Source: Macrostomum lignano (taxonomy: Eukaryota). Taken from it: a DNA stretch of 64,000 nt. This document shows positions 31,201 to 34,200 of the stretch, piece by piece. The stretch's first letter is position 1; each line of letters starts with the position of its first letter. Below the pieces are notes generated by a model. The model worked only from the letters and a program-made list of their open reading frames with translations. It made no database searches and was not told where the DNA came from. The stretch spans positions 62,001-126,000 of the forward strand of contig NIVC01001441.1 of assembly GCA_002269645.1 (NCBI GenBank), written 5' to 3'. The position numbers were made by a program, and so were the translations under genes.

Positions 31201-34200
31201 TGGCAGTCCTCCCCCTCAGATCAGCCGCTCCTCTTTAGGCGGCCGCAGCACCGCAGAAGCGGACGTCGCAGCCACTCGTTTCTGACTGTCGCCGCCGAAC
31301 TCCAGGTTGCTGGGCCGGTACACTCCCGAGCCCTGGCGCCGGGTTCTGGCGTACACGAAGCCACCCACGGAGGCCGAGACGGCAACGATGAGCACAACAC
31401 ACAGCGGCAGGCCCACTGCTAGGCCGATGTCAATGACGGAGCCTCCGTTAGCCGCAGTGGCGTTAGGCATGACGGTCGCAGGAGCTCTGGTGCTTTGACT
31501 GGGCCTTGAGCTGCTGCACACTCTCTTGCCGCTTGGGCTTGGTCGAGCTTGGCTAGAAATACCCGAGCCCAAATCAGCCCAGCTAATAAGGCGCTGCGCA
31601 TTAATTTGAGGCCGAGTATGCAGTGCCGGCATTCAATTAGCATTTGCTGTATCGGAATGTGCCCTGTTCTGGACAGGTGACGGAGGGTCACGGGGGTCAC
31701 ATGCACACGCATTATTTTTGCGCACCCGAGAATTTCAGTTTTACTTGTGTGCGTGCGAATTCGTTTTTTAAATACCGCCTTGTGCACTTTTGTTCGGCTC
31801 GCTGTCAGCCACACTGCCTGTTACTGAATCCTTTATTGAGATACCCCAGTCAGGGAATTAGAAGTTATTAAGTATATTCCGCCGAGTGTCTTCGTGCATT
31901 CAAATTACCGCCATTCTACAAAGCATTATTAAACCTTCAAAAAGAATTCATTCAGTGACTTCAAATGATTTATACGCTCAAAATTAATTAAAGATAAATG
32001 ACTTCGGTAATCATGAAAATTTTCAATTTCTCTAGAACTACTGAAGTGACCCAGAAATGACACAGTGACCTAAAAAGGACACGGTGACCTAGAAATGTGA
32101 CCCAGAAATGACTCAATGAACTAGAAACGACATGGTGACCCAGAAATGACTCGATAACCTAGAAATGATTCAGTGACCCAGAAATGACTCAGTGACCCAG
32201 AGATGACTCAGTGACCCAGAAATGACTCAGTGACCCAGAAATGACTCAGTGACCCAGAGATGACTCTGAGACCCAGAGATGACTCAGTGACCCAGAAATG
32301 ACTCAGTGACCCAGAAATGACTCGATAACCTAGAAATGACTCAGTGACCCAGAAATGACTCAGTGACCCAGAAATGACTCAGTGACCCAGAAATGACTCA
32401 GTGACCCAGAAATGACTCAGTGACCTAGAAATGACTCGATAACCTAGAAATGACTCAGTGACCCAGAAATGACTCAGTGACCTAGAAATGACTCAGTGCC
32501 CCAGAAATGACTCAGTGACCCAGAAATTACTCAGTGACCCATAGATGAATCAGAGACCCAGAAATGACTCAGTGACCCATAGATGACTCAGTGACCCAGA
32601 GATGACTCAGTGACCCAGAAATGGTCTCAGCAACCCTAAACGACTCGAGTTTCCACCCCAACGGTCCCCTCAGAAGCAGAGTCGAAGCCAAGACCCCACC
32701 TGATTCTTGTCCAGCTCGCAGTTCTTGTATTCCTGCTCGCCCTCCTGCTGAAATGTGACGATGACAAAGCCGACAAAGATGTTCACCATGAAGAAGGCGA
32801 TCACAATGATAAAGGCGATGTAGAAGATGGCCATCGGCGGCCTGTTGTTGTAGATCCCGCCGCGGCCCTCGCTTGCCGAGTCGATGGACTTGTAGAGCAG
32901 GCTGCGGGGAGAGTAGATCGGAGTAGAGAGGGAGTAGATCGGAGTAGAGAGGGAGTAGATCGGAGTAGAGAGGGAGTAGATCGGAGTAGAGAGGAAGTAG
33001 ATCGGAGTAGAGAGGGAGTAGATCGGAGTAGAGAGGGAGTAGATCGGAGTAGAGAGGGAGTAGATCGGAGTAGAGAGGGAGTAGATCGGAGTAGAGAGGG
33101 AGTAGATCGGAGTAGAGAGGGAGTAGATCGGAGTAGAGAGGGAGTAGATCGGAGTAGAGAGGGAGTAGATCGGAGTAGAGAGGGAGTAGATCGGAGTAGA
33201 GAGGGAGTAGATCGGAGTAGAGAGGGAGTAGATCGGAGTAGAGAGGGAGTAGATCGGAGTAGAGAGGGAGTAGATCGGAGTAGAGAGGGAGTAGATCGGA
33301 GTAGAGAGGGAGTAGATCGGAGTAGAGAGGGAGTAGATCGGAGTAGAGAGGGAGTAGATCGGAGTAGAGAGGGAGTAGATCGGAGTAGAGAGGGAGTAGA
33401 TCGGAGTAGAGAGGGAGTAGATCGGAGTAGAGAGGGAGTAGATCGGAGTAGAGAGGGAGTAGATCGGAGTAGAGAGGGAGTAGATCGGAGTAGAGAGGGA
33501 GTAGATCGGAGTAGAGAGGGAGTAGATCGGAGTAGAGAGGGAGTAGATCGGAGTAGAGAGGGAGTAGATCGGAGTAGAGAGGGAGTAGATCGGAGTAGAG
33601 AGGGAGTAGATCGGAGTAGAGAGGGAGTAGAGGTTAGGGATCAGTGATTAGGGGTTGTTTTAGTGATGGTAGGATCAAAGTTACAATGGGATTTCAGTGA
33701 CAATGGCATTTCAGTGACAATAGGATTCATAGACAAATGGAGGATTGTATTCAGTGACAATGGGATTTCATAGACAAATGGAGGATTGTATTCAGTGACA
33801 ATGGGATTCATAGACAAATGGAGGATTGTATTCAGTGACAATGGGATTCATAGACAAATGGAGGATTGTATTCAGTGACAATGGGATTTCATAGACAAAT
33901 GGAGGATTGTATTCAGTGACAATGGGATTTCAAAGACAAATGGAGGATTGTATTCAGTGACAATGGGATTTCATAGACAAATGGAGGATTGTATTCAGTG
34001 ACAATGGGATTTCATAGACAAATGGAGGATTGTATTCAGTGACAATGGGATTTCATAGACAAATGGAGGATTGTATTCAGTGACAATGGGATTTCATAGA
34101 CAAATGGAGGATTGTATTCAGTGACAATGGGATTTCATAGACAAATGGAGGATTGTATTCAGTGACAATGGGATTCATAGACAAATGGAGGATTGTATTC

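Follow-up and report, generated by a model that had tools for sequence, protein, structure and literature searches.

The stretch of DNA considered here (the window) comprises 64,000 nucleotides of the flatworm Macrostomum lignano, positions 62,001 to 126,000 of contig NIVC01001441.1 in assembly GCA_002269645.1; positions on the contig equal window positions plus 62,000. The myosin-light-chain gene of the window (9959-10429) occurs identically on this contig, and proteins of the assembly are labelled Macrostomum lignano. A gene for an L-type calcium channel, Cav1, runs along the minus strand of the window over ~32 kb (21490-53179). One of its introns holds a short open reading frame (ORF) on the same strand (NIVC01001441.1:93216-93632), whose predicted product combines a small N-terminal stub and a single transmembrane (TM) helix with a C-terminal tail that, judged by its sequence, is a genuine intracellular domain of the Crumbs family.

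A reading frame inside a calcium-channel intron

The host gene was assigned to the L-type Cav alpha-1 subunits from its translated minus-strand exons, which match alpha-1C, alpha-1S and alpha-1D. Its exons encode the four-domain Ion_trans arrangement with Cav1 proteins as best matches and include an IQ motif, the features by which an L-type alpha-1 subunit is recognised. The exon map was obtained by tblastn with a Cav1.2 segment, which is used as a lead only; the coordinates themselves were computed (Table 1). The intron of interest separates the exon for segment S6 of domain III (IIIS6) from that for the III-IV linker, and has a phase-0 donor (..DKNQ/GTGGGG, first intron base 32699) and the acceptor ctctgccag/CGAAAG (exon from 30244). 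The ORF lies within it in sense orientation, with Cav exons 1.07 kb upstream and 0.97 kb downstream. This nested, same-strand arrangement had been proposed in an earlier reading of the window made from the letters alone, referred to here as the sequence-only reading, and is borne out by the exon matches and splice sites that bracket the ORF, with the correction that the host intron is just ~2.45 kb in size. Inside the intron, the ORF belongs to a 965-bp island (31080-32044), unique in the window, that is bordered by a minisatellite on either side and extends ~410 bp beyond the ORF in the upstream direction. The ORF block forms a GC-rich island (0.60-0.72) in an intron with a GC content of 0.44.

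The ORF opens with an ATG at 31632, directly preceded by a stop codon. In its product a non-hydrophobic N-terminal third precedes a Ser/Thr/Pro-rich region that carries an N-A-T sequon, after which come a single hydrophobic helix and the tail. An acidic residue on the N-terminal side of the helix and the sequence RTRR on its C-terminal side predict an orientation with the N-terminus outside and the C-terminus inside the cell. This is the layout that the sequence-only reading had described: the frame with its hydrophobic TM segment was recovered exactly, on the minus strand and with 138 codons, and both the short Ser/Thr/Pro-rich ectodomain stub and the sequon are present in the translation, whereas the tail, put at about 42 residues, measures 43. 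Depending on the start codon, the product has 84-138 residues with a domain-less ectodomain stub, in keeping with the size of short Crumbs proteins (~100-120 residues). It likewise conforms to the TM-plus-tail plan of the family, with a helix of ~25 residues, RTRR and a tail of 43 rather than the usual ~37 residues, the difference being a 6-residue insertion in the linker. A Pfam search with the ORF gave no meaningful match; a model of the Crumbs tail is not known to us from Pfam.

Table 1. Features of the window (positions in window coordinates; GC3, GC content at third codon positions)
Feature	Position	Strand	Basis or remark
ORF, 138 codons + stop (stop = 31216-31218)	31216..31632	minus	candidate minimal Crumbs coding sequence
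Internal ATG, Met55	31468..31470	minus	codon-usage onset
Ser/Thr/Pro-rich stub (residues 31-54)	31471..31542	minus	weak, low-complexity alignment
N-A-T sequon	31456-31464	minus	sequence
Single transmembrane helix, 26 residues	31348..31425	minus	sequence; aligns with TM of PAA86411.1 and of the 177-residue CRB3-like protein
Crumbs-type intracellular domain, 43 residues	31219..31347	minus	PDB, protein-library and HMM matches
FERM-binding motif region (tail positions 1-16)	31300..31347	minus	alignments
C-terminal class-II PDZ ligand (ERLI), 10 residues	31219..31248	minus	only ERLI-stop; alignment
Overlapping ORF, other frame, signal-peptide-like 24 residues (ATG 31601)	31419..31814	minus	GC3 0.52
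TATA-like tatttaaaaaa	31764..31774	minus	sequence match alone
Host intron, ~2.45 kb, between IIIS6 and III-IV-linker exons	30245..32699	minus	splice sites
40-bp minisatellite, 10 copies	30666..31079		downstream edge of island
19-bp minisatellite, 31 copies	32045..32623		upstream edge of island
Cav1 exon, IIIS5-pore	35173-34877	minus	tblastn
Cav1 exon, domain III S6 (LLYKSIDS...)	32700..32900	minus	tblastn
Cav1 exon, III-IV linker + IV S1	30086..30244	minus	tblastn match 30247-30086
Cav1 exons	29784-29680 and 29588-29517	minus	tblastn
Cav1 IQ-motif exon	21490-21789	minus	IQ motif
Protein kinase	~1-1696	plus	downstream of Cav1
Alpha-tubulin, 451 residues	3505-6342	minus	GC3 set
Universal-stress-protein gene	7891-8364	minus	GC3 set
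Myosin-light-chain-like EF-hand gene	9959-10429	minus	GC3 set

Identity and relatives of the Crumbs tail

Crumbs tails carry a juxtamembrane motif that binds FERM proteins and a terminal ERLI that binds PDZ proteins (PMC4359734). Numbered from its first arginine, the tail of the ORF has G8, Y10, P12, S13 and E16 in register, of which Y10 and E16 are reported to be essential in fly Crumbs (PMC4359734). It ends in ...PPKEERLI-stop, the only ERLI followed by a stop codon in the six frames of the window. In other animals ERLI is the ligand of Stardust/PALS1 and Par-6, and from the motif the same binding is predicted for the ORF product.

The assignment to the Crumbs family does not depend on these motifs alone. 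A profile hidden Markov model (HMM) was built from 33 non-redundant Crumbs tails, among them mammalian CRB3, arthropod Crumbs, the longer M. lignano protein PAA86411.1 and a 177-residue CRB3-like protein, with the window sequence excluded. Among all 1581 six-frame segments of the window it scores the ORF at 47.4 bits (E=1.1e-13), the runner-up segment reaching 9.8 bits. Of the 19 columns with 90% conservation or more across the 33 tails, the ORF agrees with the family at 13, compared with 9 of the 39 other columns, and two of its six mismatches in the conserved columns are K-to-R exchanges; this concentration of matches in conserved columns implies that selection has acted on the functional residues across a deep divergence. 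When the TM helix and tail were compared by phmmer with all PDB chains (177,635 sequences), a single sequence matched, if weakly (E=1.6), namely Drosophila "Protein crumbs" (4WSI, 4YL8), and the alignment spans the first arginine to the final isoleucine in both sequences.

A full HMMER scan of 1.84 billion representative proteins gave five matches. Two are of the Crumbs type and align at their C-termini, the sole non-self matches with Crumbs tails: PAA86411.1 of M. lignano (P0098; 403 residues), the best match in the scan (E=3.7e-4), and the 177-residue CRB3-like protein (P0099; E=6.7e-4), which is encoded on a Logan contig of run SRR22388065. In BLASTP comparisons with the 84-residue C-terminal part of the ORF product, these two proteins gave E-values of 6e-11 and 2e-9, respectively. 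A repeat protein (P0097) without a Crumbs tail was treated as spurious, and the remaining two matches are M. lignano gene models that are discussed below. A word-indexed protein search with the whole ORF returned no match; this search is unreliable, since it also missed those two models, which hold pieces of the ORF. The profile, the full scan, the pairwise BLASTP comparisons and the PDB match are four independent tests with the same outcome. They uphold the claim of the sequence-only reading that the tail belongs to a Crumbs protein and, as an intracellular domain of this family, carries motifs for FERM and PDZ binding.

The 177-residue protein occupies positions 232-765 of Logan contig SRR22388065_7972487 and combines a signal-like peptide and Ser/Thr stub with a TM helix and the tail ...GIYNPSKQE...ILKVPPEERLI. 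Searches for literature on Macrostomum or planarian Crumbs, for CRB3 in M. lignano tables and for run SRR22388065 found nothing useful.

The closest relative is M. lignano's own reduced Crumbs, represented in GenBank by three near-identical proteins of 316-408 residues, of which PAA86411.1 (BOX15_Mlig032429g1) and PAA65284.1 (Mlig007680g1) have 403-408. The layout of PAA86411.1 comprises a signal peptide, a laminin-G-like region, EGF, a Thr/Pro stalk, a TM helix and the tail RDRRKDTGVYKPSDRELGSGKSGQQSMQDILRPPNEERLI. In Pfam its EGF domain lies above the cut-off, whereas Laminin_G_2 scores 20.5 bits, just below the cut-off of 22.9; a second EGF-like cysteine repeat is recognisable by eye. The gene for PAA86411.1 is intronless and lies on another contig (NIVC01000282.1; 4600-5811 in locus L002), PAA65284.1 and PAA49883.1 being further copies. 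One copy (316 residues) ends before the TM helix, and the public labels of the longer protein read merely 'hypothetical' or 'EGF-like domain-containing protein'.

Over the TM-proximal region and tail, the ORF and PAA86411.1 share 44-45% identity, and the last 11 codons are 85% identical in DNA. A 14-residue piece of the stub also aligns by tblastn to the stalk QTTTPPLTTMPQTA of PAA86411.1, weakly and in low-complexity sequence, and the stub is possibly the remnant of a mucin-like stalk. Several features are common to both M. lignano tails and absent from the fly, human and 177-residue-protein tails in the alignment: [S/T]7-G-V9-Y (T7 and V9 in PAA86411.1) and, after the FERM motif, E-x-G-x-G. 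Both also have LRPPxEERLI in place of the LK[PLV]PPEERLI found elsewhere in the alignment, and both have a lengthened linker, with tails of 40 (PAA86411.1) and 43 (ORF) residues that exceed the usual length. From these shared, lineage-specific features the ORF is probably a 5′-truncated paralogue of the lineage's own intronless Crumbs-like gene; PAA86411.1 and PAA65284.1 differ from it in having the signal peptide, EGF, laminin-G-like region and long Thr/Pro stalk. At ~45% identity the split between the two is old, and the retention of an open frame and of every key residue in spite of this implies purifying selection for most of the time since.

A candidate minimal Crumbs gene and its alternatives

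On balance, we take the ORF to be a functional minimal gene of the Crumbs family, composed of a stub with a sequon, a TM helix and a complete intracellular domain, and hold this reading with moderate rather than high confidence. Most likely it began as a 5′-truncated duplicate of the intronless gene for the 403-residue Crumbs-like protein, which would have landed in sense in Cav1, between the exons for IIIS6 and the III-IV linker. Whichever start codon is used, the helix would have to serve as a reverse signal anchor, a mode made plausible by the distribution of charges, with an orientation (N-terminus out and C-terminus in) fixed by RTRR, as has been proposed for C. elegans CRB-3. The tail would then bind a FERM protein of the Moesin, Yurt or EPB41L5 type via RxxxGxYxPSxxE and, by way of ERLI, Stardust/PALS1 and Par-6 at their PDZ domains. 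If expressed, the product could be a scaffold at the apical membrane, or it could compete or cooperate with the longer Crumbs of M. lignano. Regulation by aPKC may be altered in it, as T6 and T9 are missing.

The coding character of the ORF changes along its length. M. lignano coding sequence in the window has a GC3 of 0.63-0.94. From Met55 to the stop codon, the GC content by codon position is 0.68/0.54/0.75, as in coding sequence, whereas codons 1-54 show a pattern (0.52/0.69/0.52) that is not coding-like; codon-usage log-odds are positive in the Crumbs frame alone, from ~31480 to 31240. The frame described by the sequence-only reading stands, while its first 54 codons look non-coding by codon usage and the true start is perhaps Met55. 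Initiation at this codon (ATG 31470) may be correct and would give a protein of 84 residues with a 14-residue ectodomain that retains the sequon. Met1, which gives 138 residues, may also be the start: a small training set yields low scores for Ser/Thr/Pro-rich stalks, and the resemblance to the stalk reaches upstream of Met55.

Two further signals overlap this region. The overlapping ORF in another frame (GC3 0.52) contains a signal-like peptide; all GT-AG pairs that could splice this peptide to the Crumbs frame were listed and none was credible, so that the overlapping ORF is probably fortuitous. In the third frame, a run of 29 codons (31552-31466) that follows the good acceptor tatttctag reaches a GC3 of 0.79, and a frameshift would be required to connect it with the Crumbs frame; by our estimate this signal is non-significant once three frames are allowed for. 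Either the overlapping or the third-frame signal could reflect a one-base assembly error, or chance.

A number of observations weigh against a functional gene. In addition to the non-coding-like first 54 codons, no signal peptide was found in the Crumbs frame. A transcript from the TATA-like element, starting ~30 nt downstream near 31745, would meet out-of-frame AUGs first. M. lignano trans-splices ~30% of its genes with a 35-nt leader ending in ATG at [T/C]TNCAG acceptors (PMC8629364), and no such acceptor motif occurs near the ORF start. No AATAAA lies within 570 nt of the ORF stop; the first downstream ATTAAA, at 30390, is still intronic. No record of the 138-residue product was found either by exact look-up among the gene calls of public assemblies, including this GenBank genome, or in the full scan. 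The missing gene call carries little weight, as the annotation is sparse and the host Cav gene was likewise not found in it. The threonines targeted by aPKC in fly Crumbs, T6 and T9 (PMC2172211), are also absent from the tail, which has G6 and V9 instead, along with S7; these threonines are not a universal defining feature of the Crumbs family. Finally, a position between two intronic minisatellites is also expected for a dead fragment.

The strongest of the alternatives is that the ORF is a silent relic: a 5′-truncated duplicate or retrocopy that was constrained for a long time and is now unexpressed, or present in intron RNA alone, and without function. Several observations are in keeping with such a relic: neither a promoter nor a spliced-leader acceptor could be identified, nor a poly(A) signal close by; the frame lacks a signal peptide, and its N-terminal third looks non-coding; the ORF is missing as a product of its own from the collection's gene calls; and it sits in an intron between minisatellites. 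Moreover, an open frame of 84 codons at 65% GC is by estimate not very improbable on its own. Yet the frame has acquired no stops or frameshifts, every key motif residue has been kept at ~55% divergence from the nearest relative, the GC pattern by codon position is still coding-like, and the missing annotation is uninformative where the host gene is missing as well. We regard a relic as unlikely, while giving it a real share of the probability.

The ORF might instead be the final exon of a more extensive gene, with upstream exons, for a signal peptide or an ectodomain with EGF and laminin-G domains, that lie beyond the intron or the window. On arthropod genomic contigs the last exon of long crumbs genes appears as a TM-plus-tail ORF of ~74 residues, so that a TM-plus-tail ORF alone is no proof of a short gene; the want of a signal peptide and a CAG acceptor at 31593 that keeps the Crumbs frame open point in the same direction. 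Against this, only 1.07 kb separate the ORF from the next upstream Cav exon, ~580 bp of which are occupied by the 19-mer array, and this interval holds no exon with an ATG and a hydrophobic segment. The six frames of the 64 kb contain no real EGF-type cysteine pattern, the single regular-expression match falling in a tandem repeat, and tblastn of the whole M. lignano Crumbs-like proteins, ectodomain included, matched the window just at 31497-31219, that is, over stalk, TM helix and tail. The sequence-only reading had seen no EGF or laminin-G exon in the window, and these scans agree with it; the ORF lacks the extracellular EGF and laminin-G domains that define a long Crumbs. Any additional exons would need to alternate with those of Cav on one strand or be located past the 5′ exons of Cav, at a distance of more than 21 kb, and the other M. 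lignano Crumbs gene is intronless. We therefore consider a last exon improbable.

Slightly less probable again is an alternative exon of Cav1 itself. It is suggested by two UniProt entries recovered in the full scan, A0A1I8FGX9 (P0095) and A0A1I8FJI4 (P0096), which are M. lignano Cav gene models that map to window positions ~31690-26130 and fuse pieces of the ORF with Cav exons. We take them to be models on the older ML2 assembly. The ORF lies on the host's strand, the phase-0 donor at 32699 and the CAG acceptor at 31593 are in frame, and the following Cav exon might be spliced to a GT that comes after ...SQKR. The two models, however, switch among all three frames within 400 bp; they look like prediction artefacts on an indel-rich assembly, chimeric mis-annotations of Cav1 fragments rather than transcripts, and all they demonstrate is that gene predictors pick up coding potential in this region. 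Signals for such splicing are weak, since GTGGC, the donor, departs from the consensus GT[G/A]AG. Moreover, a TM helix placed after S6 of domain III would put the FERM- and PDZ-binding tail outside the cell and leave its strict conservation unexplained, and splicing out the C-terminus would leave the conserved ...EERLI-stop unexplained. Lastly, chance resemblance in a GC-rich open frame, for which the shortness of the tail and the single-sequence PDB E-value of just 1.6 might be cited, can be regarded as already refuted by the full protein scan (E-values below 1e-3 in 1.84 billion proteins) and the independent family profile (E=1.1e-13), with the TM helix, the spacing of Y10 and E16 and the C-terminal stop all in register.

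Known short Crumbs proteins and the surrounding sequence

Short members of the Crumbs family are known from other animals. C. elegans CRB-3 (C35B8.4) has 100 residues and no signal peptide, and its TM helix is presumed to serve as an internal signal for the endoplasmic reticulum (Waaijers et al., 2015, PMC4359734). CRB-3 and the ORF product share a very short, domain-less ectodomain, one TM helix, the lack of a signal peptide, positive charges after the helix and a tail with Y10 and E16, and each coexists with one or more longer Crumbs paralogues. CRB-3 ends in EGLI instead of ERLI, its tail has ~37 residues compared with 43, and the position inside a Cav1 intron is a feature of the ORF alone. 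CRB-3 has been shown to be expressed and to localise apically, whereas the ORF is known here from its sequence.

Vertebrate CRB3 (CRB3a, ~120 residues) resembles the ORF product in its Ser/Thr-rich stub with an N-glycosylation site, its TM helix and a tail with G8, Y10, P12, S13 and E16 that ends in ERLI, and differs from it in having a cleavable signal peptide, a multi-exon gene and T9, which is V in the ORF. Identity amounts to 37% with human CRB3 and 43% with fly Crumbs, over a tail of ~40 residues that is too short for phylogeny. The likeness to CRB3 is one of architecture rather than of demonstrated orthology, and the derived residues shared with PAA86411.1 point to an origin within the lineage.

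In Drosophila, the TM helix and 37-residue tail are known together as 'Crb-intra' (4WSI, 4YL8), and their FERM- and PDZ-binding motifs align end to end with those of the ORF; fly Crumbs has the aPKC sites T6 and T9, both of which the ORF lacks. In flies, TM helix and tail alone rescue most crumbs phenotypes (Wodarz 1995; Klebes & Knust 2000, as cited in PMC4359734). The ORF resembles this engineered minimal construct as a natural counterpart.

The sequence-only reading had presented the ORF as an independently evolved, CRB3-like short Crumbs in a spiralian, and the flatworm source agrees with this. The likeness to CRB3 is real, and a separate origin is plausible in view of the best match to M. 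lignano's own protein and the derived features of the tail. The novelty was overstated, as the ORF would not be the first such protein outside vertebrates: CRB-3 of C. elegans precedes it (PMC4359734). Short Crumbs proteins are therefore a type already known in vertebrates and nematodes, to which the ORF adds a flatworm case, probably of separate origin, in the intron of a calcium-channel gene. A more far-reaching proposal is that flatworms made a domain-less Crumbs by truncation, separately from CRB3 and CRB-3, and that it is expressed inside the Cav1 intron, possibly riding on host transcription, so as to couple a polarity scaffold to the expression of an L-type channel; this we consider doubtful.

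If the ORF is expressed, it would provide a natural 'Crb-intra', an anchor plus a tail, in a spiralian that is amenable to transgenesis, and would support the view that what is conserved in Crumbs as its working part is the intracellular domain, while the ectodomain has been shed repeatedly by animals. It would also be a second gene of the Crumbs family in M. lignano, one that does not appear separately in the public protein sets searched and is merged into Cav by the two older models. Its nested position on the host's strand makes it a good case in which to examine the processing of intronic genes in M. lignano. In other respects the ORF is an expected type of family member that calls for no new mechanism, and the gain lies mainly in annotation.

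In GenBank the contig looks sparsely annotated, and the gene for Cav1 may lack an annotation: the exons tested (IIIS4-pore) had no match among the M. lignano proteins of the collection, and no gene is called in 10430-20429. Long minisatellites, each of them different, occupy many Cav1 introns and the flanking intergenic DNA (window 5029-63997), with periods of 4-128 bp and up to 137 copies that are often 94-99% identical. There are ~30 high-scoring rows of them in 64 kb (for example 23037-24331, 32911-33631, 33710-34783, 46086-48064, 50911-52292 and 61185-63997), and many yield long spurious ORFs in several frames. Downstream of Cav1, positions 1-10429 hold a compact cluster of intron-poor genes, and the tubulin, stress-protein and EF-hand genes have a very high GC3 of 0.85-0.94.

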